From contig JBLDXI010000029.1 of assembly GCA_047495785.1 (NCBI GenBank), forward strand, positions 2,976,001-3,040,000: a stretch of DNA of 64,000 nucleotides. The letters are read 5' to 3'. This DNA is from Lepidodermella squamata (lineage: Eukaryota; Animalia; Gastrotricha). The position numbers and the translations under genes were made by a program. Below, in pieces: positions 1,101-35,984 of the stretch (the stretch's first letter is position 1; each line of letters starts with the position of its first letter). The notes under the pieces are model-generated. The model saw only the letters and a list, made by a program, of their open reading frames with translations, did not search any database and had not been told where the DNA came from.

Positions 1101-1219
1101 TTTACAACTATTTCAAGATGATAGGTGACACAAGTAAAATGTCTTTTGTCTTTGCCTCTTTATTCACATCAGAAATCCCACTTTTTACTTGTCACCTATC
1201 ACTTTGAAATAGTTGTAAA
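1101..1219. mobile_element. Small foldback/MITE-like inverted repeat
   Basis: TTTACAACTATTTCAAGATGATAGGTGACACAAGTAAAA is imperfectly mirrored by TTTTACTTGTCACCTATCACTTTGAAATAGTTGTAAA. Confidence 0.6.
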
Positions 1220-1907
1220 GAAATTTGCATGGGCCTTGCTGAAATAACACACTGGGGATCGAGAATACCAATTCATAGGTCCTGAACTGCTTGGAGCTTT
1301 CAGGTATCAATGTTTGTGGTAATTATGCGCTGGAATTTAAATTTATATAAGAATACCGTTAAATTATGTTACATCGCCATTTTTTATTGATATTCCAATT
1401 GAATGCTGGTGTGAAACGCGCCGTATCTCGCTCTTTCGAACGGTATAAAATGTATAAGAATAGGGCTAATACATCCGGAGATGATGACGGTAAAAACTTG
1501 TGAAAATAATTTTTGTTGCGCGCAAAATGACGCTTTTAATTTTACATTTTTCTCAAAATGTGAAAAAAATTATCTTTAAACGTCTATATACGCGATAACT
1601 ACGTCATTCTGAGGTATTTTGTCGAACGGTTTTCACCTATGGATTCGGGATGTCATGGCCAACAACCCCATGTACTCATCTGGAAATGTGAAAAAATTCG
1701 CCAAGATACACGTTTCACTTTGCAGCGGTCAAATGTTCAGGTCTGAAGTTGATGTTCAAAACCAAATGAAAAGTTCAAAAACGAATTTTCCCATTAAATT
1801 TCAATTTTCTTCAGTTTTCAGTGCTTGAACCATAACTTGGGAAGGTGTTTCGTCTCAATATCTCTTTTTTTAGAGAATTCAGAAAAAACAGGCGACAATT
1901 AAGAAGT

Positions 1908-4163
1908 TTAGATTTCATTTATTCTCCAAAATATAATTAAAAACATGATGCTAGAATTAATTTCCATTTTCCCAGAACAACTCGCTAAAATCGGAATTTT
2001 CGGCGCCAAAATGTCCACAGATCGCTGCTGATTTGTCGCCAATTTTCTAGTCGATGTCGTATAAAATCTCGGATAGCCACTTGAAACTTCATTATTTTGC
2101 GTTGTAGTTTCGGGAATTTCGGACGAAAATTCATAATCCAGGGGTTCTTCTGGAGAATCCATGCCGTAATTAGTCGCTGAAATAGCGTTGAAAATCGCGC
2201 TATTAAATCGCGGAACAACAATTAGGTCATTCAATTGCTGTGTCCCACTTTCAGGCGCGCACAGCGCATTATTGCGCGCACTACACCTGCAGCCAATCAG
2301 CGACGCGCCTCGGCCCAGCAAAACCTGAACCATCGCCTCGCGATCTTCACAAGCCGCCCATATAACAGCCGTTCGATTGTACAGCGAATCTCTCGCATGC
2401 AAATCCGCACCCCGAGCCAGTAATAGCTGCGCAATTGCGAGCCGACCCCATCGCGCGGCTAATATTAAGGCGGATTGTTTATAGCCGTAGTCAGGGTACA
2501 GCTCTTCCTCATTCACCGAGACGTAGCTTGAGTCGAGAAATGAGGCGACAACTTCGATCAAATCAGCTCGAATCGCGTTGAAAAATGCCGATTTTAGCGC
2601 GTAAGGATTGACCTGGTTCAAGGGACATATCGCCTGTAGGGTGCCTAGTCGAGTTAGGGTGATGAGGTAACTCGGGTCCGAACAGTCTCGAACAGCTGGT
2701 GGGAACAAAAATCGGGCGGGATTCGATGCTGATAACATAGGCGGGTAATTCGGGTAAATAACAGGTGGATAAGCATTATCATCAATTGTTCGAGTTGGAA
2801 TCGGTCTCGGGGTTGTATCAATAAATTTAATGGTTGAAATTGGCATTAAATTGCTTCGAACTGTTGCGGCTCGGGTTGAAGTTGTTTGAGGCGAATTTTG
2901 AACCCGAATTGTCGGTCGAGGGGTACTTTTTACCAATGGTCCTAAATATTGACGAATCCACGGAATAACTCGACAAATTCCTTAAAAATATGAAATTAAA
3001 TTTAAATTTAAAAAATATTCAAAATTCAAAAATTCAGTGTTCAAATTATTGAAATTTTAAAATTTTAAAAATTCAAAAATTGAATTTTAAATTTTGAAAA
3101 TTGGCTTTTTGCCAACAATAAAACATACTTGAATAAACCGAAGGCTTTTCGCCTCCAGTTTCATTACAAGCCAAATGACCGTAGGAGGTAAGTGCCAGTA
3201 GGTACGGCTGGTTATTCGACCCTAGACAAGTCAAAGGTCCGCCAGAATCGCCGCGGCACGTTTGCTGGTTCGGACCGCCAGTTGCGCATATTTTCGCATC
3301 CGTGAAGTAGTCACCCTGATAAGTGAGCGCGCACTGGAGAAACGGTGCCATGTTTAGCGAAATTTTTTTCAGCCTCATTGACATGTAATCGGATGGGCCC
3401 GTCAATCCTATTTAAAAATAAAAATTGATTATAAAAAAAGATAAAAAATTAATTCAATTAATTCAATTTTGAAATTTGAATTTTAAAATTCGAAAAAATT
3501 GAGAACTTTTATTTTTTTCAAGCCATACCCCAGCCGACTGATGTCCCTTTCCAGCATGAATCGATTGTAGACGAAAGTAGGTCATAGTCATTATCGCAGT
3601 AATTATCGGGCAAATCAATAGGTTTTATCCCCATCGAAAGCGAAACTGGGTAATTAAGGCGTAACAGGGCAAAATCGAAATCAGTATTAGCACCGGGCCG
3701 ATAGTAAGGATGCACGTGAATGTCCCTATCTGAGACTAATCTAATCGCCTCGCCTCGCTCAGTTGTACTAAGATCAGTTTTCCCGAGGATAACTCTTGAC
3801 CTAATTATTGAAATTTTATTATAAAATTAATTAATTAAAATCGAGGTCATGGTACCTAATTGCTGTTTCTCGGCCTGTTGAGACACAATGCCCGGCTGTG
3901 ATGACCCAATTGTCCGAAATTAGGGCACCGCCGCACACAAATGTGTCAACGCCTGGGACATCGCTATAAATTCGAACCTAAATTTCATAATTTAAATTTT
4001 TTAAATTTTTTAAATTTTCAATATATACCATCCATGGAAATTCGAACCGTTGAGCAAACGACCCGCCTACAACGAGCGGGCCGTAATTTGTTGTTAAATT
4101 CGACGATTGGCATTCACAAAATGAAAATAAAACAACAACTAGCCATCCAATAAAATTGATCAT
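1908..4163 (-). CDS. S1 (chymotrypsin-fold) serine protease fused to a Pro/Thr linker, about 3 ankyrin repeats and a hydrophobic C-terminus; ~626 aa
   Basis: Exons 4163-4029, 3977-3856, 3800-3529, 3407-3129, 2980-1908, all GT-AG and frame-consistent. Signal peptide, activation site L|VVGG, CGGALISDNWVITAGHC (His), DFALLRL (Asp), GDSGGPL (Ser), VYSRICRVIPWI. The last exon continues into ANK motifs (QSALILAARWGRLAIAQLLLARGAD; RTAVIWAACEDREAMVQVLLGRGAS). Confidence 0.88.
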
Positions 4164-4466
4164 AACGGCGCCTCGAAATCTCAGCAATTCTTCATCACCC
4201 CATTCTGACGTGAAATTAATAAAACATTTTTTTTTAATGATTTTTTGTGTGTGAAATTAACCAAGGTGCCAATGCGTGATAAAACTTGGAAAAACCTCGA
4301 GTGACTCTCAGAGTAGACATAATAAAAAAAAATTGCCGAGTGCTGACCGAGTTGAATTATAAAAAATTGCATTTTATTGAACGTACAAAAATCAAAATTT
4401 AAATTGTGTTTATAACATTTTGCTGGTAAATTTCATAAATTAAAACAAAAACTGGATTTTATTTTG

Positions 4467-5936
4467 TCAATTTCGCGCCTCTTGTTTGGAATAGGCTTGA
4501 AGGGTAGAAGCATTCAGGATCAGCTCGTCGTAACTCGGAGGTCGACTCGAATTCACCGCTGTTTCGCCCAGCGTCGAGGTGAAATCACCCGTTGTCGCAC
4601 CCTGGGACCTTGAAGTCATCGCCTGCGAGTCAAAGGTCGCTCCAGTTACTAAAATCATAAAAAAAGTTTATATTAAAAAAATTGACCTAATTTATGACAA
4701 ACTAACCGGTTAGTTCAGGCGGGTTATTTCTCCGCCTCGGAACAGCCGGGGAGAGACTTGACCTTAAAGCCTGGACATGCCTGCGGTTGCGATACCTCTG
4801 AACAACTTTCCAGCTCAAAATAGCCGTAGCGCAGCATGAGAAGAAAGAGAGCGCGAAAACGTATAGCACCTCGGCATTACTCGCCCTTCGACGGCGAGGC
4901 GGCCGTTGGCTGGCCTGGATCGGGGCGGTTTCGGCTGCCAACTCGAATTCGGTTGTAGTTGCCGTGGTTGTTGTTGTAGCCGGCGATGTTGGCGCAATGG
5001 TCGATTTAATCAAAGGAGTCACAACGCCTCGACAAAAATACTTTCAAAAAATGAAAGATTATTTAATAAAAATTTCAATTTCAATTTAAAAATTTTCAAT
5101 TTAAAATTCTGAAATAATTTGAAAAATTCATTTTAGATTAAAAAAATTTTTCGAATAACTGATAATTTTTCTGAAGTTTTTTGTAATTTTTTGAAATTTT
5201 CCGAAATTTTTGAAATTTTTACCTGAATCGATCGACCTGATGCGTGAAAATCGACGAAATCATCCACCTCGCCAAAGTACTCGGCACTTGCCTCCGTTTT
5301 CCGGCTAAGAAAATGCTTGGCCGACTTGCCGTCGTGAAATTGCCACGCCTTCTGCTCAACAGCGTGACTGAGCGTGAAATTTCGCTCCAGCCTCACACTA
5401 CGCCCTAGCAACGACTCGACAATTGTCTCAAAAATTGGTGAAGCGTGACGGCGTGACGTGCAACTTGTCGCAGCTCGGGCCGGCAGGGTGTTCACAGTTA
5501 GATCCGGGCGTAAAATTTCCAACGGTGAACAAGCGCCGAATAACCGCCGCGCAAAACACTGAAGCGCGAAATTCGGCAATTTTATTAAGGTGGGCTTTTT
5601 TTCGTCACGCGTAATTAAATCGCCGCACAGATAAGTCTCACGCGTATCGATTGTAAGGGCCTTGTGAATCGACTCGGCAGCTTCTGGCATCAATCTCGCG
5701 AGTAACTGCTCGAAAATTTGCGGCGATTGATCGGCAATTAGCGATAGATGACCCTCCGTTCCGCATGGCTGGCTTTCGGATAAACTGTTACGTTGAATCG
5801 AAACAATGCCGATAACATAGACAGATTTTATCGCTGAAGAAGTCGAATTTCTCGCAGATTCGGTCACGGTTGAGTTACTCGCAATAGAAATTTCGGGATG
5901 ATAAAATATCAACAATAAAAAACTGAGAAAAAGCAT
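4467..5936 (-). CDS. Uncharacterised type-I single-pass membrane protein (~409 aa): Cys-containing ectodomain, Thr-rich stalk, TM helix, cytoplasmic PPSY motif
   Basis: Exons 5936-5223, 5040-4707, 4648-4467 with canonical splice sites. Signal peptide MLFLSFLLLIFY; TM VLYVFALSFFSCCATAILSWKVV followed by basic QRYRNRR; tail RPPSYDEL. Confidence 0.8.
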
Positions 5937-6131
5937 CTTCGTAGTTGGCTCTTATTCTGTTGAAAATCCAAAATTTATTTGTCGAAAAATTTGAGAAATT
6001 TAAATTTGACTGTGGAAACACGTGTTTGAATTTCCCGCGCGTGCCCCAACATCTGGCACTCATCTGGAAATTCTGGAAACAAAATTATAGGCACACCTCA
6101 TAATTTTACATCATTAATAAACACAATAATT

Positions 6132-9100
6132 ATGATACGTTTTTTACTTTATTCTTTGTTGTTTTTTGGCGCCTCGTTAGCAGACGAATTCGACTTGAAC
6201 TATGATGACACTGATACTTCAACGACTGCAACTCATCCGGTTACGACAATAGAAATTTCCACGACCACCTTAATTACCGAAAAAATCGAGGTTTAATTTT
6301 GAAGTTGTGAATTTTCGAAATTTAATTTTTTTCAATTTAATAGCCGAAAACATGTTTTTTGCCCGCCATTGAGAATGGCGAAATTGAGTTGCAAGGCGGT
6401 AATAATGAAGGTCAAGCTGTGCAAGGTTCAATAATTCGGCTGATTTGTATTTTCGGCTTCGAATTGGTCGGAAAACGCGAATCGAAATGCGTTAATGGAA
6501 ATTTCACGCCGGCACTTGGGCAATGTGTTGAGCTTGAGACTACGACTACAACTACGATTACTGAAGCTACGACGGCTGAAGAAGCTGTGCCTGAAGTCAC
6601 GGAACCTATTTCGGCTAAAAATATCAAAGTCGAAGCCGAAAAATCTGTCAATGTAAATTTTCATAATTTTCGTCAATTTTAATCTTTTTTCATTTTTCAA
6701 AAATTTAAATTTCGAATTTTTCTTGAATTATCAGTGTGCTATGCCGCCAATTGCGAAGGGTCATTTCGAAATTGTGGGAGTTCAAACCAGTGATGAAACT
6801 CTAGAAATCAATCATGGTGTGAAAATTCGGCTAATTTGCGAGCCTGGCTACACAACTTTGGGCACGAATCTAACCGAGAGCCTGTGCTTCAACGGCGTGT
6901 TATTCCCACAACCCGGCCAATGCGTAGACGCTACGACAACAACTCTAGCTCCACCTATGGTTCGTTTTTAATTTAATTTTTTTTTAATTTTATGAAAGGT
7001 TTTACTTGATTGCATTTGCCTGAAATTTGGAATTTTTCGAAGAAATTTCAATTTTTTTTCAATTTTTTCACAAATTTTCAAATATTTCGCAAAATCAATT
7101 AATTTCAATAATTTGAATAAAAATCTTTAAATTTTAAAAAAATCTGGAAAATTTCAATTTTAATTCATTTATAGTGTCTTCATCCTGTTGTTGCTAATGG
7201 GAAACTCGAAATCCCTAATGATGCGGATTCACTAGATTACGACCTCCATAGTGATCATGAACTTCAAAGCCAACCAGAATTCGTACCAATCGGAACCAAG
7301 TTGCGACTGACCTGTTCACCCGGTTATAAATTACTCGGCGGTTCCGAGTTGCTGTGCTACAGCCTTCATCATCAGCCTTCAGCCAGCTGGTTCCCACTAC
7401 CCGGCCGATGTATCTCGATCCCGACTACAACCACCCAGCAACCGGTCGCTTGCAAATGGCCGTCGGTGAGTGGCGGCTGGTGGTTGGAAGAGGACCATCC
7501 GGATCTGCTGGAGGCAATGGGCGAGAACCACCTGTCGCCTGTCGGTACCGTTTTGGTACTTCAATGCTCGTCGGAAAATTTCGAAATTATCGGCAGCAAA
7601 CGAATTTTTTGCCGCGAGAATTCGCAATGGTTTCCTGAACCTGGAAATTGCAGCCAAGGTAAACATATTATTTTCAAAAATCAAATTGAGATTTTCCGAT
7701 TTTTTTCAAATTTTCTTCGATTTCAATTTTTCTATCCTTAAACAATAATAATTCACCATATAGCTCTGGCATATATATTTTAGCAACCTGATAACCTAAG
7801 GTATGAAGAAAATTGTTCGATGTAGGATTCCCTAACTGCTGATATCGGAAAAATCACTGATTTGTAAAATCGATAACTGGAATCGATATCGGCTTCGCAG
7901 ACTCAAGTATGACTCATAATCTGACTGCCGATAGCGCAAATTGCGCGTAATAATGAGACCTATGGGCTAAACATTCAAAATTTAAATTTGACGCAAATTT
8001 TAAAAAAATTGAAAATTAAAAATTCGAAATTTGAATTTTTAATTTTTTTTTCGAGTCATTACCACTACAACCGAATCGCCATCGACTACGCAAGAAGTTC
8101 GCTGTCAGCTGCCATCAAGCGGCATAGGAAAGCTCTCAATCGATCACTCGAATCATGAGACATTCGAAAGTGTCTCATTATACTCTGAGATCACCCTGAC
8201 CTGCCCTGATAATTACGTAATCACTGGCGCGAATCGGGTCATGTGCGTAGGCCGCAACCAGCTATTCCCCGAACTCGGCCAATGCGTACCTGAGCAGACC
8301 ACGACTACTACAACAACAACCGCTACTACTCCTACCGAAACGACGACCATTATCTATTGCTCGGTGCCGCTTGTAGAAAATGGGCGTTATGATCTGTCAA
8401 GTGAAGATGATCCTATGAGTGTGTTGCCGGGTCGGAAAATTCAACTGACTTGCAACCCAGGCTACCAACCATCTGGGCCGAGTTCTAGCTCGATTTGCAT
8501 AGCTGGTGGCAACTGGTTCCCGAAAACTGCTGATTGTGTTGAAGGTAAATTAAATTTTCTCTTAATTTCAATTTAAAATTGCAATTTTTTAAAAGTGACT
8601 ACACCCGTTCCGCAAACGACGGCTAAAATCGTGCTACCTAATGACCGACTTTCTGGCGGTGAGAAATTTTGCAATGTCCCAACTTTGTCAATTGGGCGCT
8701 TTCGTGATGCGCAATATTTCGAAATTACGGAGGAAAAGCTACCGCTGGGTACCGAGATGTCGCTGGATTGCCCGGACGGGTATGACGCAGTGGGCGCTGA
8801 TCACGTGATGTGTGCCGATGGCAATAAATGGTTCCCGCCTACAACGGAGGCGAATTGCGTGCCGAGATCTACGCCTTCGGTGAGGATTAATCCGGAAAAT
8901 GTTGGTGCGAATTTTGAGACGGAGACAGCAGGGTGCGATGTCCCAAAAATTAGTACAGGTAATAATCACGAGTGTCATCAATTTTATTAGCTGTTAATAT
9001 TTTTTATTAGTTCATTAGACTATTTAAAATCACTTGAAATTAGCCGATTTTTCGCTAGATTGCCTGACCTAATAAATTTAGCAAAATTAAAACTTGTGTG

Positions 9101-12100
9101 CGCGTTCGAAGAATTCTTAAGAATTTTTCGACGGCGCGCGCTGACGTCAAAGGGCTACTTTTGAATATTTTGGCGGTTTTCATACCAAATTAAAATTCAG
9201 AAAATTCCCTATCGATTGAATATAGGGTTCTCGCGCGAAAAAATCAATGGGAACATTTTTTACGCACACGCTAAATTTCGAGCGCGCGAAGGAATAACGC
9301 ACTTAATTGACTCACAAATTTCGAGTGCGCTTACATTTTTTCCCATTGTATTTTTCGCGCGAGAATATTCAATCCCTATACTCAATCGATAGTGAATTTT
9401 CTGAACTTCATTTTAGTATGAAAACCGACAAACTATTTGATAATTGCCCTTTGACATCATTAGCGCGCGTTGAACGTGTCGAAACCTGGTTTTTTCTTCT
9501 CAATTGATGTCATTTATTTATTTCCAAGCTAATTGTTTTGTTAAAAGGTGATATTTTTCTATATTTTTTCCTCAGGTTATTACGCGGCCGATGGAGTTGT
9601 TAAAAATGTTGCTGTTGGCACCGAGTTGCACTTGACGTGTAACGAAGGTTATGAGGTGCCTATTACACATGGAACCATCAAATGTGTCAATCACAACACG
9701 TTTTTCCCTCTACCTGGAGAGTGCGACCTGCGTAGCACTGCTGTAGCAGATAAAGTTACTGCTGAGGACTCGAAAACGATTTATTGCGACGCACCAGTGG
9801 TCGAACATGGCAAATTTGATGGATATTCAGACCATGGGGCAAGTTGAATTATTCTCTATTTTCTTATTTTTTTCCAAATTGAAAAATTGAAAATATTTGA
9901 AGTGAAGAATTGAAAATTGAAAATTTTATTTATTTTTATCAATTTTAGTATAATGATAAAATTAAACTAGGGGAATTTTCTCTTTTTTGTCCATTTAAAA
10001 TCCAGTTTATTATTTTAATTTTTTTTATTTAGGCAGAGAAATTACCTCTCGGCACTGAATTGTGGCTAAATTGCGACGAAGGTTACGTCGCTACAGGCGC
10101 GACCGAAATTCGTTGTGTTGGCGAAAATGATTGGTTCCCAAAAGCAAAAGGAACCTGCGAGGTGATAGCAACAACGACCAGGACTACTATTTCTACCCCA
10201 TGCTCGAAACCGGTAATTGAAAATGGATCCTTTAAAATCACAAAGCCGAAGGATACAACGGCGACGATCGACGATGAATCATTGCCGGCTGGTCACGTGA
10301 TTAAGATCAAATGTGACCCGGGTTATTTCAATTTCGGTGCAACGTCCAGTATCTGCCTGGATTCGGGTGACTGGTTTCCAAGCTTGGCAACTTGCCAATT
10401 GCGTAAGCAAATTTCAAATAATTTAAATTTCGAAATTTAAAATTTAAAATTTAAAAAATTTAAAAATTTTAAATTTTGATTTAAATCATTTTCGCTAAAT
10501 TTTTAAAATTTGAATTTTTTTAGTTACGACTACTTCAACTCGAAGCCCACCTACGACACAAAAGGCCTATTGTTTACTGCCCAAAGTCGAAATCGGGCAA
10601 CTTTCCCGTGATTTCAGCCCCCTTCTCCCCGAATTCACCTTAAGCGTGGATGTTGGAAGCGAAGTGTCCCTGTCATGCCCTGATGGCTACATTGTCCAAG
10701 GCTACAGTGCAGTCATGTGCGTCGCCCAAGGCCGTTATTACCCTCAGGAACTTGGCCGATGTGTGCCGAGACCTAGCCCGACTACTACACCAAAACCGAC
10801 TCGAGTTTTTTGCGTCCTACCCCAGGCTGGAAATGGCCGCGTTGTCGCAGAGGAAAATTCGGGTGAAAATCAACAAGTTGGCCAGAAAATTCGGGTGATT
10901 TGTAACGATGGTTACTTACTGTTCGGCTCTAATTCGTCAATCTGCTTACCCGATGGCAAGTGGTTTCCGGATCTTGGTCAATGCGGAGAAGCTCCTGAAG
11001 GTAAAGGAGCATTTTGATTGAAAACATTTGAAATTTGAAATTAAAAAATTTGAAAATTCAAGAAAGTGAAATTTTGTAAATAATATAAAAATAATTTAAA
11101 ATGACCATTTTCGAATTTAAAAAATTCGAATTTTGAATTTTTTAAAATTTGAAATTGAATTTGAAATGAAATTTCGAAATTTTTAATTTTTGAAATTTTA
11201 TGTCAATCTCTGATTAATTTTCAATTTTCTTTCAATTTTTACATTTCTTTGTAAATTCAGAACTCGTTCATGAGGCTTCCGAATTGAGAAATGCGATTAC
11301 TGCTGGGGAATTGAGCGATGTCAAGAACATCTTCCGACCCTCGCTAAGTCCAGATTTCGCTAAATACCTCGAAACCAGCCGAGACCACGAGCAAAACGAT
11401 GAAACTCTAACAATGCGAGCGGCTGAAAGCGGGAAACTCGACGTTTTGAAATACCTGGTCGAAGATCGCAACATCGACCCGACTACTACAGACCGGCTTG
11501 GTCGAAACGCGTTGCACATTGCGGCGAAAAATTGCGAAAATATCGAACTGTTAAAATATCTCGCTCAACGAAATCCCGAGATGATCGAGGCGAAGGACGA
11601 CGAGTCGGGCAAAACGCCGCTTATGTATTCGATTATTAACGATAAATTGAGCTGTGCTGTTGAGCTGGTCAAGCAGTTTTCGGCTGATGTTGACGCGACT
11701 GATGGCGAGAAATGGTCGCCGTTACATTTTGCGGCTCAAAATGCCTCAAAAGCTATCGTCGCCTTTTTGTTAGCAAAAGGTGAGATAATTCTGAACAATT
11801 ATTTTAAGGCGGCCTTTTTAATTTTTAATCCTAATTTTTTCAATTTTCCTCATAATTTTTGAATTTTAATTAAGGTGCTAAAACTCGAGTGAAAAATCGC
11901 GACGATGACCTTCCAATTCATATCGCGGCTAAATTTGGCAACAATGGCGTGTTAGAAATATTGCTATCTCGTGACAGTGCGTTGCTAGAAGAATCTGGGT
12001 CACACGGCGCGACGCCCCTAATTAGCGCGGCCGAATCAGGTCAACTGCGTGTGGTTCAATTGCTGCTAAACGCGCATGATGCGAATATTGAAGCGCGGGA

Positions 12101-13698
12101 TGACACGTCGAGAACGGCTTTAATTGCTGCAGCGATGACTGGCCATCTTTCTGTGGTTAAATTTCTGGTGAAGAAAGGAGCGAATTTGAAGGCGGTTGAT
12201 GCTGATGGCAACCAGGCTGTTGATCTAGCTAGGTCAGCTGGCCATGGTGACGTGGCAAATTTTCTCCAGCAACAACTTGGTAATATTGCTCAAATTGTCA
12301 TTTTACCTGAAAAATACCTTTTCCATTTTTTTCGAACAGCTCCAATCGAAATGGTGAGTATTAAGATTTTTGAAAAAATCACCAAATTGGAACCTAATTG
12401 GAACCAAAGTTCATAGTCTGGAATATCAAACTTGGAAAAAATATTCATTTTCGAATAATTTTTGTTAAATGAAAATTAGCCGTATGTTCTGAAGTTGACG
12501 ACATGCTAAAATTCACGCACAATTCATGATAATTTATTTAAATTTCCCAAATCAGTTAAAAATTGATTTGGCTCCGCATTTAACGCTTGAAACTTCTTTC
12601 TTACTAAATTTTATTCTTAATGGAATTAATTTTTATTTTTTTACTTAAATTTTAGTGCGAAGTGCCTGTTGTAGCTAACGGTGCGTTTTTCGCGATTTCC
12701 GCGCCCGGCAAAGAAAGGGAGGTCAAGAATCCGACCCGGCTCAAAACTGGTTCCAAGCTGGTTCTCAAGTGTATCATCCCACTCGTTGTTGAAGCTGAAG
12801 CTGGGCTAACCTGTGCCGGTCCCAACACTTGGCAACCCCAGCCTAGCAAATGCATCAGCGCTCCAGCAGGTAAATTTTAAAAATATTTGTAAATAATTGA
12901 ATAAATTTAAAAAAATGTGAATTTTGTAAATTTATCAGAAATTTAAATTTAAATTTAAATTTTAAATTTCATTGCGATTTTTTACATTTTTTAGAACTCA
13001 AAGCCACCATGAAATCCTTGCGTCAGGCAATCGCGGCTAAAAATCTGGCCAAGGTGAAAGAAATCCTGGAAAATCCGCAACTGGACGATTCCCGAATCCG
13101 ATATTTACTCGACAGCCGATCGGAATTATCCCCTTATCGCACCTCGTTAATGGCCGCATGCCGCATCGGCCATTTGCCCATTGTTCGGTATTTAATCGCT
13201 GAGAAATCGGCAAATTTCGAAGTTCAAGACGGCGCGAAAGGCGACACGGCTATGCACATCGCCGCCCAGGCTGGTCGTTTAGATATCGTACAATATTTAT
13301 CCACCTTAATGACGTCAGAAAAGCACTCGCTAGCCGGCGCGAAAAACGACAAGGGCGAAACGCCGCTGCATTACGCAGCTCAATCCGGCCATTTGGAGGT
13401 TGTCAAATTCCTAACCACCCTGCCCGATGGTGATGGCCGGCATTTGGTCGATGTTGAAGCAGCGGATGAGCTGGGCAGGACGCCGGTTATGTCGGCGGCC
13501 TACGCCGGTCACGTGGCTGTTGTTGAGTATTTGATTGGTGAGAAGCACGCGGATGCGATGAAGCGTGACAAGGCTGGTGATATGGCTGTTCACCTGGCGT
13601 CGTATGGCAGCAAAACGGCGGTTGTCCAATTTTTGTTCAACAAATTTCCGGATCTCAAGAATGTGAAAGGCGCGTATGACTACGTCGCCAAAGCTTGA
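6132..13698 (+). CDS. Secreted protein of ~1664 aa: signal peptide, 12 sushi/CCP domains with Thr-rich linkers, ankyrin block, 13th CCP, second ankyrin block
   Basis: 14 exons: 6132-6290, 6344-6652, 6735-6959, 7175-7658, 8056-8544, 8596-8958, 9576-9838, 10033-10402, 10524-11000, 11261-11779, 11875-12279, 12340-12353, 12656-12869, 12995-13698. Phases are consistent (4995 nt). CCP pattern C-x-x-P-x(3)-NG...L-x-C-x-x-GY...C...W-F-P-x(3-4)-C. ANK motifs such as GETPLHYAAQSGHLEVVKFL. AATAAA at ~13738; no TM segment seen. Confidence 0.88.
9128..9474. mobile_element. Long imperfect palindrome (MITE-like) in intron 6 of the CCP-ANK gene
   Basis: Arms of ~150 bp, e.g. GCGCGCTGACGTCAAAGGGC / GCCCTTTGACATCATTAGCGCGC and CTATCGATTGAATATAGGG / CCCTATACTCAATCGATAG. 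Confidence 0.75.
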
Positions 13699-14096
13699 AA
13701 TTGCTAGATTCGAGTAAACTTTGTTTGGCAATATCGAAATAAAAGTCGACAATTCGATTGTTTCGCTTTTTAGGATTCCATATTTAAAAATTGGAGAAAG
13801 CCAAACTATTCGAACCTTATAGCAAAGTGAAGATCAATCACTAAATCTTTCCGATTTTTTCCGAAAATTTACCGACTTTTTCGCCAATACTTCCGGCGAA
13901 TGCCCCACTGAAACCGAATTGTCGGATCGATAACTGAAGGACCAACGCTATGGCAATGCACATGCCAAATTTCGTTGCATTTAACATATATTTAGCTCGA
14001 ATTCACACTGAGCAAATGTCTCATGCTAAAACGACTTGCTCAGAAAATAAGAAAAGCAATTTTTCATTTTATTTGCAAAAAGCTTTCGTGGAACCT

Positions 14097-15307: not shown

Positions 15308-17274
15308 TTACGCCGTGGTGGATTGGCATCGATCCAACGTGAGGCCATATGCCGATGTTGACGCATAGATCACAGTATTGGCTGCGCTACCAGCGCCAGT
15401 TCCAGCTACAAGAGCGGCACAGCAGGCTGTGTACGAGGTGAAGGCTTTCAATGAGGGGCTCGAAGTCTGAGATGAAAATGGTTGATTGAATTGATAAAAA
15501 ACGCAAACAGAACAAGATAACTTACGACCCCTGACCCTGCTTCAACATCACCGACAGCATTGGAAGTGTGCGGGAAGCGAACGCAGTTGCCAACCTTAAC
15601 GACACTTGTGGTAGCTGTAATCTTGTAAGGGATACTATCATCGGTTGATATACAGGCAAGAGCCGGAGCCACTGATGCTGTGAGGCCAGGCAGGATCTCG
15701 TAGCGAATGTTGGCGGTCAACGGTGAAGCCGGGGCTGCAGCGGCGCAGCAGTCAGGGAATGAGCTGTAGGAGTTCGGGACAGATGCAGTTGCTGTGGCTT
15801 GCTGAATACAACTTAAGTCATTCACTGCTTGAAATATCCATTCTCTATTTTACCGTGAATGTGTTAGGGCCGAAAGCAGCGGTGCAAGCCAGGCCGTTAG
15901 TAATGCACAGCTTGACAGTCTTAGAGACTGCTGTTCCAAACGTCGAGCCCGTGCATAGCTGAAACGTTTGCTGTTGCATAATGAAACATTTTAGGTTCTA
16001 GGAATTAACTATTCATGGGCAGGGGTGCAAAATCTGCAAAAATGGCGCAGTGGCTGCGCGGGAAATTTTTACGCGCAGCGGGAAATTTTTGGGAAATAGA
16101 GTTGTGAAAATGCTCAGAAATCGCCAAAAATCAGCGGGAAATAAGGGAAATCAGCGGGAAATCTAACAAGTAATTAATCTTCCGCCGATAATTAATTTCA
16201 ATAATTAAGTGATTGAACTAATTAGCAATTCACGAATGACTTTTCTATCTAATTCCAATAATAACTTCTGTTTAACTAACGCGAAATCGGTGATAATAAC
16301 GGTTAGAAATTTCAAAAAACAAATTAGATATTCCGATTCAGCGTAAAAAGTTGGGTATTCCTGCCAAGTTGCGCGCAGCTGTGTTTGAAAATGAGGGAGA
16401 AATGCGGACTGAAAGTTTGCTTGTAACTGTGTGCGCGCACAAATCAGCGAGCGCGCGCGCACAACAGCGCACAACTGCGCGATTTCCTCGCGTTGAAAAG
16501 TGAAGGGGAGCGGGCGAGTGCGAGTGAGCGAATTTTTGTGGAGCACACACGCACGCACACGCGCGCGCACACGTGCAAAAATTGAAATTTGTTTCCGCCT
16601 ATTTCTCAACCAATTTTCACGATAACTGTGCGCAAATTTACAGGGCGGGGTAACTTTTCGCGCTGAATCCGAATATCTAATTTGTTTTTTGAAATTCCTG
16701 AAATTGAAAAACTTGGTTTATCTGCGTAATTAAGAATGTTAGGGTAATTACGATATTTAGCCACAAGTTTTTGGTTACCCCTAAATATGTGAATTATACT
16801 AGTATCAAGCCGTATGAAATGCGAAATCTGGCCACCAATTTAGGCCTAAAAATGTTTATACAAATTTAAAAATGTGCCGAATCGAGTATTTTCAGACATT
16901 TTCTCACTCCAAAATACTGATGTTTCTTACAATTTTTGCGCCGCGCGGGGCTTTGCAAGAAATAACCCACAGAAATACATTCCGCGAGCGAGCGCAGCGA
17001 GCGAGCGGGTTTTTCGGGAAATTAAAATCACTGCGCGGGAAGTTCTGCAGATTTTGCAGCCTTGTGCAGAATTTACCGCTGTGGAGCACGCCTGGGTGCC
17101 TTGGCATTGAGTTCCGGTTTTGCTGATGCAGTTTTTGGTTGACGTATCGCAGTTGTTCGACGTAGCAACACACGATTGGCCAGAAGGGCAAGCGCTCGAG
17201 CTAGTCGTTGTGGCCGGGCAAGCCATAACGGCACTGCAGGCAGCGGCAAGAACAGCCAGAGTTGAAAAGGTCAT
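15308..17274 (-). CDS. Secreted Cys-rich family protein, copy A (intact, ~249 aa)
   Basis: Exons 17274-17077, 15970-15854, 15801-15526, 15466-15308, all phase 0 and GT-AG. Signal peptide MTFSTLAVLAAACSAVMA|C; motifs QTFQLCTG, FPDCC, NIRYEILPG, GNCVRFP, YTACC, YGLTLDRCQS. Confidence 0.85.
16020..17064. mobile_element. Non-autonomous DNA element in intron 1 of copy A, with a nested inverted-repeat element (~16290-16705)
   Basis: TIR-like ends CAGGGGTGCAAAATCTGCA / TGCAGATTTTGCAGCCTTG and GCGGGAAA subterminal repeats. Internal inverted pair AAACAAATTAGATATTCCGATTCAGCG / CGCTGAATCCGAATATCTAATTTGTTT. The equivalent intron in copy E is only 64 nt. Confidence 0.75.
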
Positions 17275-18017: not shown

Positions 18018-19010
18018 ATTTTCAAACAGCTCCAATTGAAATGGTGAGTACTGAAGCCCTTAGAAAATGGCAAAATTCTTAAAAATCAGGCAAACTTTCA
18101 TGGTTACATCATAGAGAAAAAAATGACCAGAGGGTGAGCAAAGAAGCTAACATTTTGGAATTTCCATCTTTATTCTGCCCGTTCACCAAATTTTGCATGC
18201 ATAAAGAACGCGAGCTGTTCTTTCACGTTGCTCTTTCACGTGGCAACCCAGCCGTATTAATTCACACGATACAAGAAAGCAAAAAACGATACCACGTGAA
18301 AGAGCAGCTCGCATGCGAAATTCGGTGAACAACGGAGATATCCGATTTGAGAAAGTCAACTTTGAATAAAGATGGAGATTCCAAAATTTTAGCTTGAGTG
18401 CTCACTTTGGTTATTTTTGTCTCTATGTCTCTTACATAATATTCATGTCGATTTTCTAAAATAATCCAGAAATTCCTAAAATTCTCCAATTAATTTGGTT
18501 CCGCATTAAAGTTCTTTCTACCCAATTTCAGTCTTAATGGAATTTATTTTTGTTAGAAAATTGCAAATATTTCGAAGTGCATTATTCCATTGGCTGTTGA
18601 AGCTGAAGCTGGGCTCACTTGAACCGGTACCAACAATTGGCAACCACAGCTCCAGCACGGCTATGCATATCGCCGATGTTGAAGCGGCGTATGAGCTGGG
18701 TATGAGCCCTGTTATGTCGGCGGCTCTAACCGGTCACGTGACTGTTCTTGAGTTTTTGGTTTATGAGAAGCACGTGCATGCGATGAAGCGCGACAAGGCT
18801 GGCGATATGACTGTTCGTAAGGCGGTTGTTCACTTTTTGTTCACTAAATTTCCGAATATTAAAACTGTGAAAGGCACTTATAACTACGTTGCCATAGATT
18901 CGACTTAACTTCGGTTGGCAATGTCGAAAATACAACGCAATTCGATTGTTTTGCTTGTTAGGCTTTATTTTAAAAAATTGTAGGAATTCCAACAATTTGA
19001 ACCTTTGCAA
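18018..19010 (+). pseudogene. Duplicated, internally deleted 3' end of the CCP-ANK gene (micro-exon, part of CCP13, last ANK repeats, 3'UTR)
   Basis: CAGCTCCAATTGAAATGGTGAGT matches 12337-12359; GCTGAAGCTGGGCT...GGCAACC matches exon 13; PVMSAALTGHV...KRDKAGDM matches 13480-13700. Confidence 0.85.
18110..18427. mobile_element. Palindromic MITE (ends CATAGAGA.../...TCTCTATG); same family as 32612-33163
   Basis: Long inverted arms; absent from the parental intron at 12354-12655. Confidence 0.8.
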
Positions 19011-19056
19011 TGTTAATATCAGTCCATGAGTCGACGCTCTTTTGCTCAAAGCTCTT

Positions 19057-19982
19057 TCAAGGGCCAGCGCTGCACATTTCAATTGTCAGTCCGTAGAGGG
19101 AAACTGTTTCAGGTGTCTTGGCATTTGGGTTGTTGCTAATGGAAAAGCAGCAAGCAGCGTAGGTTAAATAGCTAGAGCCTGGCATTCTTTTGGCCTGTTA
19201 AAGTGAAAGCGGTTGATAATGAGAAGAAATCAGGTCTTAAAATGTCTTACGAAATCGGAATTTGAGTTTAAGGCGTCTGTTGGCACTGAAGCCGTGTTCG
19301 GGAAGCGTACGCAGGTACCCTTCGAAGCGGTGGCACAAGGTGGGGCTGTTATTGCGTATGGATTATTAATCGTTGCCCCGACACAAATCGTCGTTGGAGG
19401 AGATCCTGTAATAACAGCTGGCTCGTAAAAGACATTAGCACCCGTTTGTGCGCAGCACAAGGCGAAAGTGCCGAAAGTGCTGGGTGAACTCGAAAATGAC
19501 TATGAAACATGAAAATTAAGCATTACCAACTCAACATGAATGGTTATACTGTGCCACCGGTCAACAGGTCGCAGGATCCGGCGTTGGCGAGGCAAAATTT
19601 AGTTCCCGGCGTGCCAACTCCTGGACCGCCAATCGTATCGATTTGACATAGATTGAAAACAGGCTACATTGTAAAAATAAAATTAAGAATTTCCTGAAAT
19701 TGTTTAGATCCTAACCGCGGTCATGCAAGATTTAGTCGCATCGGTACAGGCCTGGGATGACGTAACACACACGTTTGGCGATGGGCAAGTGTTGGCTGAA
19801 GTAACGCAGCTTGAACCAGGCGAGCATGTTGGCGACGGGCTAGGCGAGTTGGATGCTGGTACAGAAGGGCATGGCGTTGTAGTAGTGGTCGTCGTTGTTG
19901 TTGTTGCTACTGTTGATGATGCTGGGCAAGCGCTGCCATCGGCGAATATGACCAGGAAAACGGCGAAACTAAGAATTAACAT
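19057..19982 (-). CDS. Secreted Cys-rich family protein, divergent subfamily, copy B1 (intact, ~255 aa)
   Basis: Exons 19982-19716, 19663-19550, 19499-19251, 19194-19057, all phase 0. Signal peptide ending DGSA|C; poly-Thr; FALCC, GTCVRFPNT, YAACC, YGLTIEMC. Confidence 0.85.
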
Positions 19983-21529
19983 TTGCGCTGTAATTTATTG
20001 AGTTTAGAAAGGCAGAAAAGAAAAGATGATGTAAAAGGAAAAATAAGGCTGCTTTTATAGGCAAAGGCAGCATGCTTCTGTCGACCGCAGTAATTACTAC
20101 CGTATCTCGTTCAACTCGAATGTTGCAGCTCCATGCAAAACGAATCACTCGCATAGACTTTACCGAAGGGAACTAGCTGTATCTGCCCAGATTGAATGAT
20201 TCACTGATACCTGAGCTGAAATTATGGGTAGGCTTCCAGCCGCGGCTACCTTGAGGTCTTGTCGAGTAAATACGCCTCGAAAACATGGCCGCGACTTCAA
20301 AGCCCTAACACGTGGTAAGCATAATATCAAATCAATGGGTTGTACGTTAATTATCTGAGTTTTTTCTCTTGAGGTCATAGAGAATGTCTATGCTTAAGGC
20401 CTGCTGCAGTCACGGGCGTTTGTTGCGTTGACTATCTGTGCCTTCAAAGCCAGAGGTAAGCACTACAGTATCATAACAATGAGCTGCAGCCTAATTATCC
20501 GAGATTTTTCTTGAAGCCTGCCACAGCCACCGGCGTTTGATGGTGTAGCGGGAGTATATCAACTGACGGATTTAATCGGTTTGCTCGTTGCCTCTACGCA
20601 GGCGTTTGCTGCTAAAGTCACGTGTGAAGCGCATACACCGTGGCGAAACGATGCTCAACTTCGTTACGATGAAACAGTGTCCAGAGGGTGTTGCTATAAT
20701 TTCACGCGGTTTGAGGCTTAAGCAAATGAGCAACGCCGTATCACGCCTTGTTTAGCAGGATTCTTTCTTCATCCTCAGTTTTTAGGCGAACATTATTCAC
20801 TTTCGAGTAGGAGTGCTGCAGGATTTTGTATTATATACAGTTCCAGCTTGAAGTTGCCGAGGCTAAACCATAGGCCAAAAGCAGCAATAATGTACTTTCT
20901 TTAGTCACTAAGGTTAGAGGTGCAAAATTCTCTCGCAGCTCGCAGTTTTAACTCCGAAAAATAATCTGCTTGAACTTGCTAACTTGAAATGGGTCACCGA
21001 AGCGGTAAAAACTGTGCAGTATCTCGACTCATGTAACAAACTATACACCTTTTTATCTTTAGAAACCTGCTGGTTGTTTTGCGAACCTCTGCTATGTCAC
21101 GATTCTGCATTGTAAGAACTGTCAATCCTGGATGATACGCCAAAATCTCTGATACCCCTGATTACGAGGCTCCGTAGCTCTGAACCGCGCAAATCTGCCT
21201 CGGCATATCACTGCAGCGCAAATCATTTAGCTGCATTCCTCTCGCCGCCTCCAGCCGATAGCGATCCTCATGTCGTTGTCCAGTGGACTCGACAATATGG
21301 CGAAAAATTAAATACAAAGCTGTTCTCAAATGAGGCGAGGAGAAAGATCCTTACCCTCACAGTGCGTACAATTTCGAAATCATGCACCCTGCAAGGAAGA
21401 GAAAAAGGGCAACCTCTGCCTCAAAATCGAAACAATACTAAAGATTACTATATCCTTTCCATAATCTATGTCAATTTTAGCAGTTGCGTTTTCACGGTCT
21501 TTATTTCAAGCTTGAGAGCTGCAAGGGCA

Positions 21530-22150
21530 AAAACGTAAGAAAACAAGACAACTTATGACTCCTGGCCCTGCTTCAACATCACCGACAACATTGGAAGTGT
21601 GTGGGAAGTTAACACAGTTGCCAACATTTGTAGATGGCCCGTTGCTATAGTTGCAGTAATCTCGTATGTGGCAGAATCATCAGCTCCGATGCAGGCTAGA
21701 GCCGGACAAACAGTTTCCGTCTTGGCAGGAAGGCCTGGCAGGATCTCGTAGCGAAATTTAGCGGTATTAGGCGCAGTCGGGGCTGCAGCGGTGCAGAGGT
21801 GTAGGAGTTCGGAGCAGTTGGAGTTGCCGGGGCTTGCTGAAACAACATGTGCTATTCACAGCTTGATCTCGATTCTCTATCTTACCGTGAAGGTGCTGGG
21901 GCTGAAAGCGACGTTGCACGCCAGGCCGATAGAAATACACAGCTTGACAGTCTTGGAGACAGCTTAGAGACCGAAGGTCGAGCCAGTGCACAGTTGAAAG
22001 GTTTGCTGTAGCATAATGAACAATTTCAAGTTCCGATAAACGATAAATCTTTCTTCAGACATTGAGTTTTTGTTTGGTTGCGTTTTTGGTTTGCGAATGC
22101 TACCCAGACATTCGGCGAGCTGCAAGACGGCATGACTCGGCCGCATGACT
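21530..22150 (-). pseudogene. Cys-rich family pseudogene (exons 2-3 with indels, CC motif deleted, no exon 4)
   Basis: QTFQLCTGSTFG followed by an indel; KFRYEILPG and GNCVNFPHTSN retained; its upstream region 22330-22470 matches 31865-31970. Confidence 0.75.
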
Positions 22151-22791: not shown

Positions 22792-23140
22792 CGTCGGCAG
22801 CTCTAACCGGTCACATGGCTGTTGTTGAGCATTTGGTTGATGAGTGATGAGAAGCATGCGGATGCTATGAAGCATGACAAGGCTAGTGATAAGGCTGTTC
22901 ACCTGGCGTCGTATGGCAGCAAAACGGCGGCTGTCCAGTTTTTGTTCAACAAATTTGCGGATCTCAAGAATGTGAAAGGCGCGTATGACTACGTCGCTAA
23001 TGCTTGAAATTGCTTGAAACGATTTTTAGGTTTGATTGACAATATCGAAAATAAAGAGCAATTGGATTGTTTCGCTTTTCACGCTTTTACTTTAACAAAA
23101 TGTAGGAATTCCAATTATTTGAACCATTGCAATATTAAAA
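22792..23140 (+). pseudogene. Second duplicated 3' fragment of the CCP-ANK gene
   Basis: EKHADAMKHDKASDKAVHLASYGSKTAAVQFLFNKFADLKNVKGAYDYVANA is nearly identical to the C-terminus encoded at 13540-13698, followed by 3'UTR similarity. Confidence 0.88.
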
Positions 23141-23183: not shown

Positions 23184-24181
23184 TCAAGGGCCAGCGCTGC
23201 ATATTTCAATTGTCAGTCCGTAGAGGGAAACTGTTGCAGGTGACTGGACTTTTTGATTGAAGCTAATGGAGTAGCAGCAATCAGCATAGCTTGGAAAGCT
23301 ACTGATATACGATCTTTTGATCTGTTAAAGGGAAAGCGGTTAATAATGAGAAGACAGGTTAATAACAGTCTAAGAATCATCTTACGAAATTCATGCTTGA
23401 GTTTATGACGTCTGTTGACACTGAAGCCGTGTTAGGGAAGCGTACGCAGGTACCCTTTGTTTCAGCACTAGATGGGCCTGTTAGCCTGTATGGATTATTG
23501 GTCGTTGCTCCGACACAAATCATCGAATAAGTTGGAGGAGATCCTGTAATAACAGCTGGCTCGTAAAAGACATTAGCACCCGTTTGTGCGCAGCACAAGG
23601 CGAAAGTGCCGAAAGTGCTGGGTGACCCAGAGACTTGCTATGAAACATGAAGATTAAGTAGTACCAACTAAACATGGATAGTTTTACATTGCCGCCGGTC
23701 AACTGGTTGCAGGCTCCGGCGTTGGCCAGACAAAATTTAGTTCCCGGCGTGCCAACTCCTGGACCGCCAATCGTATCGATTTGACATAGATTGAAAACAG
23801 GCTACATTGTAAAAACAAAATTAAGAATTTCGATATGATTCCTGAAATTTTTTAGATCCTAACCGCGGTCATGCAAGATTTAGTCGCATCGGTACAGGCC
23901 TGGGATGACGTAACACACACGTTTGGCGATGGGCAGCTGTTGGCTGCAGGAACACACACGTTCGGTGATGGGCAAGTGTTGGCGGAAGTGACGCAGCTTG
24001 AACCAGGCGAGCATGTTGGCGACGGGCTAGGCGACAGGCTAGGCGAGTTGGATGCTGGTACAGAAGGGCATGGCGTTGTAGTAGTGGTCGTTGTTGTTGT
24101 TGTTGCTATTGTTGATGATGCTGGGCAAGCGCTGCCATCTGCGAGTATGGCAAGAAGAATGGCGCAACTAAGTATGAACAT
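23184..24181 (-). CDS. Secreted Cys-rich family protein, copy B2 (intact, ~273 aa; LINE inserted in the proximal promoter)
   Basis: Exons 24181-23864, 23801-23688, 23637-23386, 23321-23184, all phase 0. Paralogue of B1 with an extra CPSPNVCV unit in exon 1. Confidence 0.85.
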
Positions 24182-24294
24182 TCGTCCGAATGAAGTTTAA
24201 AGTTTAACAAGACAGAAAAAAGAAGATGATGAAGAAGGAAAAACGAGGCTGCTTTTATAGGCAAAGTCAGCATGCTTCTGTCGACCGTAATTAC

Positions 24295-30358: not shown

Positions 30359-31186
30359 GTCGCATAGTTCACAGTATTGGGGGCGTTACCAATGCTAGTT
30401 CCAGCTACCAGAGCAGCACAACAAGCTGTGTACGACGTGAAGGCTTTTAATGAAGGGCTCGGCTTCTGAGATGGTAATGGTTGATTTGCAATTAATAAAA
30501 ATTAATAAAATTAATAAAAAAGAAGAAGGTTACTTACGACTCCTGGTCCTGCTTCAACGTCAGCGACAGCATTGGCAGTGTGCGGGAATCGAACACAGTT
30601 GCCAACTTTGACGTCGATAGCAACAGCTGTGACCTTGTATGGCGTTGAATCATCAGTTCCGATGCAAGCCAGAGCTGGAGCTACAGCGGCTGTGAGGCCT
30701 GGAAGAATTTCGTAGCGAATGTTAGCAGCGTTCGGCGGAGCAGGGGCTGCCGCGGCGCAGCAGTCTGGGAACGAGCTGAAGGAGAATAGCGCAATTGGAG
30801 TTGCAGGGGTTTGCTGAGGAAACAACGAATGCTATTCACTGCTCGATCGTGATGTCTCTATCATCATACTCTATCATACCGTGAATGTCGATGGGTTAAA
30901 TGCGGCGGCGCAAGCCAGGCCGTTGGCAATGCACAGCTTGACAGTCTTAGAAATGGCTGTGCCAAAGGTCATCCCAGTGCATAATTGGAAAGTTTGCTGT
31001 TGCATAATGAATAATATTGAGTATTGAGTTAGCAAGAAGTCCGGATTTCCAAAAGCTTACCCACAGGCTTATAAAATTTAGAGAGGGGGAAGCAAGGGGG
31101 GAGGGGGACTTGCATGAAAAATATTTTGGGCTCATAGGCAACTCGAGTTCGCAATATAACCGCTTTTTCAGCGGCTTTGGATGTGC

Positions 31187-35499: not shown

Positions 35500-35984
35500 T
35501 TTCAAGGTGGAAGGAGGCAAATGAAAAGTAATTTGTTTTTGCCTCTTTATTCACGTAAAATACTTGCAATCTTTCACTTTGAAACTGACGTAAACAAAGC
35601 TAAATCGGAGTTATTCAACGTCGCTAACGATAATAATATGTAACAGTTGTTCCACGCAAGCTTTTTGCAAATAAAATACTAACCCGTTCAGCAACATTTT
35701 GATGTTGTATCAATAACTATACCTGCATATTTTTGTCAAACAAGACAGATTTTGAATTGTCTCCTGTTTTTAACAAATAAATTGTTGATACAAGACAGGA
35801 TCGAAAAATGGAAGTCGGTAAAGAATTAATTGTTTATTTGGTGAGAAATAAGTCTTACAGTGCGGTGGGTTCCACGTTATTTATTTGTGGTATATTGAAT
35901 ATTTGTGCTGCGGGAGAAATTAATGTATATAGCATGGAAATGTTTCGTTCACAGAAGTTACTACGACTCGAGATCGAAGTATTT

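Follow-up and report, generated by a model that had tools for sequence, protein, structure and literature searches.

A sushi-ankyrin gene of the gastrotrich Lepidodermella squamata, its transcripts and its probable extracellular product

We describe a gene of the gastrotrich Lepidodermella squamata that encodes, in one open frame, a predicted signal peptide, 13 sushi modules (complement control protein modules, CCP) and two blocks of ankyrin repeats (ANK1 and ANK2), with the last sushi module lying between the two blocks. The gene is in a stretch of 64,000 nucleotides, the whole of which was analysed and is referred to as the window (GenBank assembly GCA_047495785.1, contig JBLDXI010000029.1, positions 2,976,001 to 3,040,000, forward strand). 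The assembly has 122 Mb in 157 contigs, and the paper on it makes no mention of ankyrin or sushi (PMC11660948).

The sushi-ankyrin gene and its transcripts

The window is animal DNA with short introns, and 13 stop-free stretches on the + strand between 6132 and 13698 are consistent in phase. For the gene model all frame-keeping GT/GC..AG pairs were enumerated and the choice was then refined by read evidence. The outcome is a gene of 14 exons on the + strand, window 6132-13698, with ATG at 6132 and TGA at 13696-13698, and a coding length of 4995 nt for 1664 amino acids (aa) without internal stops. An earlier note on this DNA had read it as a continuous, phase-consistent series of signal peptide, 12 CCP modules, ankyrin block, CCP module and ankyrin block with no transmembrane segment, and the open 1664-aa frame, the Pfam domains and the joints in RNA-like read contigs all bear this out. 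The note had the junctions 11000/11261 and 12869/12995 right, but overlooked a micro-exon at 12340-12353.

Pfam was run separately on each stop-free stretch or exon, as were the homology searches, while the joined 14-exon model was used for frame, hydropathy, cysteine count and the ratio of non-synonymous to synonymous substitution rates (dN/dS). Seven stretches between 6344 and 11014 match Sushi (PF00084), six of them above the gathering score and 6344-6679 slightly below it, and there are strong Ank family matches in the stretches 11218-11859, 11874-12413 and 12901-13695. At the level of exons Sushi and Ank are the only domains detected. With a Sushi gathering threshold of 20.7 bits, the six exons holding CCP3 to CCP12 score 23.6-53.8 bits, while the CCP1 exon (17.9 bits) and CCP13 (13.7 bits) are both below it and CCP2 has no Pfam match. 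Ankyrin repeats (PF12796, PF00023) are tandem helix-turn-helix units of 33 residues; the cut-off for Ank_2 is 27.3 bits, and the three scores here are 80.9, 78.5 and 191 bits. The exons, all on the + strand, are as follows, with the main evidence for each in brackets.

Exon 1, 6132..6290, +: start codon, predicted signal peptide 6132-6182 (17 aa, ...GASLA|DE), then a segment that is acidic and rich in Thr (the open frame has its first ATG here)
Exon 2, 6344..6652, +: CCP1 (6353-6526) and a 42-aa Thr/Glu-rich spacer (Pfam Sushi E=0.004, slightly below gathering score; four Cys aligned)
Exon 3, 6735..6959, +: CCP2 (6735-6923) and a Thr-rich spacer (the gene's own CCP profile, 1.4e-18; four Cys kept)
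Exon 4, 7175..7658, +: CCP3 (7175-7411) and CCP4 (7451-7651) (Pfam Sushi 3.6e-08)
Exon 5, 8056..8544, +: CCP5 (8103-8285) and CCP6 (8358-8537) (Pfam Sushi 2.8e-09; RNA-like depth in runs X1 and X3)
Exon 6, 8596..8958, +: CCP7 (8670-8858) and start of CCP8 (from 8934) (Pfam Sushi 7.1e-05)
Exon 7, 9576..9838, +: end of CCP8 (to 9724) and start of CCP9 (from 9785) (Pfam Sushi 3.6e-05)
Exon 8, 10033..10402, +: end of CCP9 (to 10158) and CCP10 (10201-10395) (Pfam Sushi 2.6e-12)
Exon 9, 10524..11000, +: CCP11 (10571-10762) and CCP12 (10811-10984), ending ...CGEAPE in phase 1 (Pfam Sushi 2.5e-14)
Exon 10, 11261..11779, +: ankyrin block 1, N-cap and repeats 1-5 (Pfam Ank_2 1e-22)
Exon 11, 11875..12279, +: ankyrin block 1, repeats 6-9 with C-cap (Pfam Ank_2 5.8e-22)
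Exon 12, 12340..12353, +: 14-nt micro-exon coding for ..APIEM, which joins ankyrin block 1 to CCP13 in frame (RNA-like contigs)
Exon 13, 12656..12869, +: CCP13 (12656-12853), which separates the two ankyrin blocks (the four Cys and the Trp are in register; fold model)
Exon 14, 12995..13698, +: ankyrin block 2 (about 6 repeats), stop codon 13696-13698 (Pfam Ank_2 4.8e-57; fold model)
3' untranslated region (UTR), 13699..13757, +: AATAAA-type signal near 13737, poly(A) site at about 13757 (X3 contig)

Three public sequencing runs cover the stretch. X2 is of DNA type and spans the introns; X1 and X3, which belong to two other studies, are taken as RNA from their behaviour, since their depth in introns is zero, they skip introns and they show poly(A). 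Thus X1 and X3 have a depth of 0 in the intron intervals 9000-9199 and 11000-11199, where X2 is deep. The joints in X1 and X3 contigs fall exactly on predicted GT/GC..AG sites, and all three sushi/ankyrin junctions are among them. The evidence for the junctions is as follows.

6290/6344, 6652/6735 and 6959/7175, +: splice signals and conservation
7658/8056, +: loose end of an X1 contig (ending before 8054) matches the end of exon 4
8544/8596, +: absent from the listed joints
8958/9576, +: GT..AG, X1 and X3
9838/10033, +: GC-AG, X1 and X3; donor conserved in the second copy
10402/10524, +: GT..AG, X1 and X3
11000/11261 (CCP12 to ANK1), +: GT..AG, one X1 contig, 26 letters on the shorter side
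11779/11875, +: X1 and X3, 157 letters on each side
12279 to 12656 through the micro-exon, +: X1 and X3
12869/12995, +: X1 and X3 contigs have loose ends, 13 and 15 letters long, with unique matches where exon 14 starts and where exon 13 ends

The GC-AG intron is 9839-10032, and it is the donor GCAAGT that is kept in the second copy. For the micro-exon, the contigs have 13 letters intervening between 12279 and 12655 which occur only once in the window, at 12340, and the segment 12340-12353 is flanked by AG and GTGAGT, hence its assignment as an exon of 14 nt. Its presence in the RNA-like contigs rules out 12280-12413 as read-through coding sequence.

At the 3' end an X3 contig stops at 13757 and continues as 22 A, so that the transcript ends 60 nt after the stop codon. 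A loose end after 13719 was considered as a sign of a 3'-UTR intron or an extra exon and was rejected, as it is the divergent UTR of a second copy of the gene (below) and is unmatched elsewhere in the window. Since there is poly(A) at about 13757 and the loose end after 13719 is not a splice, there is no downstream membrane exon, a feature that by the earlier note would have spoken against its reading. Nor are the CCP and ANK exons on separate transcripts: RNA-like contigs splice CCP12 to ANK1, ANK1 to CCP13 and CCP13 to ANK2. The sushi exons and the ankyrin exons have similar depth, so far as contig depth, a poor measure, can tell.

In intron 6, at 9000-9400, the depth of X2 is 1126-3362 against about 100, a 10- to 30-fold rise with many loose ends, which indicates a high-copy repeat.

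The predicted protein and the second copy

The order in the protein is signal peptide, 12 CCP modules on Thr-rich spacers, an ankyrin block of about 9 repeats, CCP13 and an ankyrin block of about 6 repeats; the mass without glycans would be about 178 kDa. The first 17 residues include one Arg, a hydrophobic core of 13 residues and, at SLA|DE, a small-x-small site. With n, h and c regions judged by eye, this layout is that of a predicted cleavable signal peptide. There are 55 Cys residues, of which exactly four are in each of the 13 CCP-like modules (52 in all) and three are in the ankyrin blocks. A sushi module typically has about 60 residues and four invariant Cys, bonded Cys1-Cys3 and Cys2-Cys4, with a Pro behind Cys1 and an aromatic residue, mostly Trp, between Cys3 and Cys4. 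The modules here, of 58-79 aa each, align to the consensus C-x-P, G, C-x-x-G-Y, C, W-x-P, C. In an alignment of the 11 modules that lie within one exon, C, P, G, C, C, P and C do not vary. The Trp is present in 8 of the 13 modules, with Phe, Tyr or Leu in the remainder. The spacers between modules have 12-42 residues, and most are 30-67% Thr+Ser+Pro; they resemble mucin-type linkers and are probably O-glycosylated.

CCP13 (aa 1360-1425) has a marginal Pfam Sushi match (E=0.088 for the stretch 12656-12877) and aligns with the other modules at C, P, G, C, C, W, P and C. An AlphaFold2 model, made with the other CCPs of the same gene as the alignment, is all-beta with pLDDT 90.6, and its top 50 matches in the PDB are nearly all CCP modules (TM 0.56-0.68, probability 0.99-1.00), including modules of CD46, CR2, factor H (19-20) and DAF.

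Ankyrin block 1 (aa 1047-1354) has an N-cap and about 9 repeats, and ankyrin block 2 (aa 1431-1664) about 6, both counted by eye, and the micro-exon gives five residues between block 1 and CCP13. The AlphaFold2 model of ANK2 (pLDDT 89.3, pTM 0.88) has paired helices all along, and its best structural matches are the ankyrin domains of FEM1B and FEM1C and DARPins, with TM 0.70-0.75 and 25-32% identity. FEM1 serves in the cytosol as a ubiquitin-ligase receptor, and DARPins are products of engineering; the likeness of ANK2 to them is one of fold and does not point to orthology. The three Cys of the ankyrin blocks, aa 1138, 1178 and 1486, are not in any conserved column of the cassette alignment discussed below, so that there are no conserved Cys pairs in the repeats.

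A 19-residue hydropathy scan of the 1664-aa model gave no plausible membrane span, including between CCP12 and ANK1, as the highest Kyte-Doolittle mean (1.67) falls in a CCP13 strand with charged residues. There is also no GPI-type tail, the C-terminus being hydrophilic. Because there is no membrane span and the disulfide-type CCP13 lies between them, both ankyrin blocks should be in an oxidising luminal or extracellular compartment. That both are luminal had been proposed in the earlier note, and the spliced CCP and ANK exons, the canonical signal peptide, the lack of a membrane span and the lack of a further downstream exon all support it.

A second intact copy, likewise with 13 CCP modules and two ankyrin blocks, is on another contig (C40). 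The copies are 94.8% identical in exons and 89.6% in introns, with many intron indels. In exon 1 they differ by one synonymous base in 159 and the following intron diverges at once; conservation also falls at the donors of exons 2 and 3, that of exon 2 being GTAAAT. Where both forms are seen in X2 the variant letters are at about half depth, and all 35 of the variant letters listed are the C40 letters, from which it follows that the copies are haplotypes or very recent duplicates. Some of these letters appear in X1 and X3 contigs, across exons 8, 9 and 14, so the C40 copy is also transcribed. Between the copies there are 159 synonymous and 74 non-synonymous codon differences, and the Nei-Gojobori dN/dS values for the pair are as follows.

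Whole protein: 0.137
CCP1-12 region: 0.20
ANK1: 0.07
ANK2: 0.06
CCP13: 0, with no amino-acid change

The ankyrin end is thus the most constrained part of the protein, under purifying selection.

Ankyrin cassettes and neighbouring genes

ANK1 and ANK2 are 29% identical, in register from the N-cap. The earlier note had seen in the similar CCP|ANK junctions a sign of internal duplication of a CCP+ANK cassette, and this is not supported. Since the two blocks are only 29% identical, block 2 is 31-38% identical to ankyrin cassettes of other genes and CCP13 is 19-29% identical to the other CCPs of the gene, the shared junction looks like the family-wide boundary of a mobile ankyrin cassette, or the trace of a very old event, and not a recent internal duplication. 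Alignment of ANK2, ANK1a and nine other cassettes gives a common six-repeat cassette, each one a single exon with its acceptor directly before the N-cap.

In searches of the L. squamata genome 150 candidates were scored in each of the Sushi and ankyrin lists, and these lists barely overlap. Apart from the C40 copy no close paralogue of the ankyrin blocks is among the matches listed: for ANK2 the best is 36% identical over the full length (E 2.8e-33), with others up to 38%, and for the first half of ANK1 the best full-length match is about 30%, with shorter ones up to 37%. Upstream regions of 3-9 kb were looked at for the nine cassettes most like ANK2; in most of these a CCP is absent, and the closest cassettes are therefore not specifically sushi-linked. 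Three of the nine are preceded, as judged from genomic position, by a RING finger (same strand), by a Trypsin_2 domain and by fibrinogen-C/PAN/CCP-like exons respectively.

Two of these loci deserve mention. At L018 (G000:C46:184000-193999), + strand, the fibrinogen-C, PAN and CCP-like exons are 2-5 kb upstream of a cassette 34% identical to ANK2, and this may be a further extracellular ankyrin mosaic, with a near-identical sister at L019. At L017 (G000:C46:607000-616999), + strand, 7950-9646, there is a RING finger just upstream and a coiled-coil-like stretch in one frame with the ankyrin cassette, and for that reason the cassette is apparently also used in a protein of cytosolic type.

Searches outside the genome were made by single exon and are blind to architecture. 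An exhaustive search of representatives with ANK2 gave 143,611 matches, of which the top 150 are all giant multi-repeat ankyrin proteins of 29-47% identity, the gene's own product not being among them, a result with no bearing on origin. A word-index search with the ANK2 exon gave generic ankyrin proteins only, of 300-378 aa and 27-35% identity, under a length filter of 128-408 aa which hides full-length relatives. A feature search of the ESM Atlas gave generic ankyrin clusters only, from several domains of life.

With regard to the neighbourhood, the earlier note had placed a first extracellular ankyrin fusion within 3 kb, and there is indeed a trypsin-ankyrin gene 1.9 kb upstream on the opposite strand (1911-4256, -), with a signal-peptide-like start at 3981-4256, Trypsin exons at 3076-3826 and ankyrin repeats at 1911-2981. 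Between the two is a gene at 4705-5951, -, divergent from the sushi-ankyrin gene, with start codons 195 nt apart. It has a signal-peptide-like start and 250 aa that match nothing in Pfam, as well as a run rich in Thr, a single hydrophobic span and a basic tail.

Further along the window are two decayed partial copies of the 3' end of the sushi-ankyrin gene, both among retroelement fragments. One, at 18019-19021, +, has pieces of the micro-exon region, of CCP13 and of the end of ANK2 (74-94% identity) and an internal deletion; the other, at 22793-23079, +, has the last 200 nt of coding sequence and the UTR (86%). The remaining features of the window are repeats and small frames:

1-600, -: 30-nt periodic coding-like repeat with RR-flanked EAGYEEAQ units
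15451-15849, 21556-21855, 30514-30831, 35923-36501, 38282-38626, 49203-49520 and 57482-57799, -: recurring frame with the motif ...FPDCCAAAAPA..NIRYEILPG...ALACI..DD..PYK.TA...., a dispersed repeat or gene family
19707-19994 and 23855-24196, for example, near the recurring frames: small frames with signal peptide, poly-Thr and Cys-rich parts
47724-55059 and 56003-63338: 8.3-kb tandem duplication with identical open frames, holding a reverse-transcriptase/endonuclease-type element and small Cys/Pro/Ser-rich secreted-looking frames

Interpretation and alternatives

The structure of the gene and its splicing are established, as are the transcription of the two copies, the identity of the domains and purifying selection. 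We think it probable that the locus is a single expressed gene whose product is a soluble secretory protein with extracellular ankyrin repeats, an adaptor or a component of matrix, mucus or cuticle that holds fixed partners. Export, glycosylation, binding role and site of action we infer. The signal peptide would take the protein into the endoplasmic reticulum (ER) and then be cleaved. The 12 disulfide-bonded CCPs on their probably O-glycosylated spacers would make a long flexible stalk, at the distal end of which would be the two ankyrin solenoids with CCP13 between them. The solenoids would be the ligand-binding ends, with protein ligands held in their grooves, and the whole could serve as an extracellular adaptor or as a matrix, mucus, cuticle or gland product with fixed partners.

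The extracellular-ankyrin topology is well supported at the DNA and RNA level. Notch-type receptors also combine disulfide-rich extracellular modules and ankyrin repeats in one polypeptide, but in these a membrane span separates the modules from the ankyrin repeats, whereas here there is none and a CCP lies between two ankyrin blocks. The layout of a secreted sushi-ankyrin protein, in gastrotrichs or otherwise, is not described in the full-text literature searched, in which extracellular ankyrin is represented by a review of latrotoxins. Wide prior description of the architecture, which the earlier note had named as a point that would tell against it, is thus not met with in that literature.

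Several points weigh against this interpretation. That X1 and X3 are RNA is judged from their behaviour and not from the run record. Exons 1 to 3, including the signal peptide, lie outside the read coverage and rest on splice signals and conservation, and the signal peptide itself was assigned by eye. The joint of CCP12 to ANK1 is in one X1 contig only, with 26 letters on its shorter side. The contigs shown are of at most 622 nt and none covers the sushi array and both ankyrin blocks, so that the single transcript is deduced from the chain of junctions. The ankyrin blocks hold an odd number of Cys (three) and one N-x-S sequon, which bears on their fate in the ER. Finally function, export and binding are predictions from sequence.

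Of the alternatives, an immune or complement-like role is the first to be considered. The protein would then be a pattern-recognition or regulatory part of a TEP/C3-like defence, with a CCP array as in factor H, CR1 and C4BP and ankyrin coils that recognise, alongside protease-ankyrin genes such as the neighbour at 1911-4256. CCP arrays are a hallmark of complement regulators, and the secreted CCP-array proteins (factor H, C4BP and CR1, and in invertebrates Hikaru genki and LEV-9) resemble ours in having a signal peptide and a long row of four-Cys CCPs; the CCP13 model also matches modules of CD46, CR2 and factor H. The genome has at least 1734 Sushi candidates and about a dozen loci of TED/A2M (thioester) type, which allow such a role and do not indicate it, and there is the secreted trypsin-ankyrin gene next door. 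However the regulators of complement activation of the factor H/CD46 type, whose partners are thioester proteins of the C3b/C4b kind, have contiguous CCPs with linkers of a few residues, where our protein has mucin-like, Thr-rich spacers of 12-42 residues, and to our knowledge there are no ankyrin repeats in factor H, C4BP, CR1, Hikaru genki or LEV-9. The TED loci do not separate C3 from proteins of alpha-2-macroglobulin type. Further, there is no close paralogue among the matches listed, and the ankyrin dN/dS of 0.06-0.07 is unlike that of diversifying recognition molecules. We regard an immune role as unlikely. An adaptor with fixed partners is favoured over a diversifying immune receptor because the ankyrin end is tightly conserved, CCP13 is invariant and close paralogues are missing from the matches listed.

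A second possibility is that an internal start adds, or substitutes, a cytosolic ankyrin-only protein without signal peptide. The shortness of the contigs is compatible with internal starts, and a related cassette is in the apparently cytosolic context of L017, with its RING finger and coiled-coil-like stretch. However RNA-like contigs join CCP12 to ANK1, and CCP13 to both ankyrin blocks. The cytosol would be the wrong place for the four-Cys CCP13, and yet no other part is as conserved, the two copies having the same amino acids throughout this module. The similar depth over sushi and ankyrin exons also tells against a separate product, if only in the measure that contig depth can. We find two products improbable.

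A third is an offensive or gland product, a secreted protein that is adhesive, prey-directed or venom-like, whose ankyrin part would act on the cells of another organism, loosely as in latrotoxins. The secreted layout with mucin-like spacers would suit this, and extracellular ankyrin arrays are otherwise best known from latrotoxins, whose long arrays act beyond the cell that makes them. Latrotoxins are not known to have a classical signal peptide or CCPs, and they have an N-terminal pore-forming part. The sushi-ankyrin protein in contrast has a predicted signal peptide and sushi modules, and Pfam, which sees Sushi and Ank only, detected no N-terminal pore-forming part and no pore or enzyme domain. 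The comparison with latrotoxins made in the earlier note therefore holds for an extracellular ankyrin array and is otherwise loose, there being no latrotoxin-type N-terminal part. Strong purifying selection is also atypical of toxins, and a product of this kind seems to us very improbable.

That the gene is an artefact, with separate sushi and ankyrin genes fused into a chimera by the prediction or joined by the assembly, is conceivable for an assembly built from amplified DNA, in which amplification can make chimeras, but is largely refuted, with hardly any chance left to it, by the same layout on a second contig at 5% divergence, by both forms at half depth each in the DNA run X2 and by RNA-like contigs of two other studies that cross the domain junctions.

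Ankyrin repeats are among the commonest protein-binding folds, and those of animals are nearly always regarded as cytosolic or nuclear. DARPins show that the ankyrin fold can bind targets outside cells. We put at about even the chance of a wider proposition, that ankyrin solenoids are genuine extracellular binding modules in L. squamata. They would be a natural counterpart of DARPins, which are engineered, and would parallel the receptors that jawless fish build from LRRs. The sushi-ankyrin gene would then be a conserved core member, with fixed ligands, of a much larger secreted ankyrin repertoire. It would also be the clearest proof in terms of topology, since splicing places a disulfide-bonded sushi module between two ankyrin blocks in a protein that has a signal peptide in front and no membrane span.

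What this locus contributes is a CCP set between two ankyrin blocks, together with RNA-like contigs that cross the domain junctions, and as those junctions are backed by transcript data the claim of extracellular ankyrin is directly testable. If it is true, a conserved and expressed gene would show that evolution has used the ankyrin fold outside the cell, and would provide natural templates for secreted ankyrin binders. It also raises the question, in a barely studied phylum, of what the ligands may be for the many secreted sushi-ankyrin and protease-ankyrin proteins of this genome.

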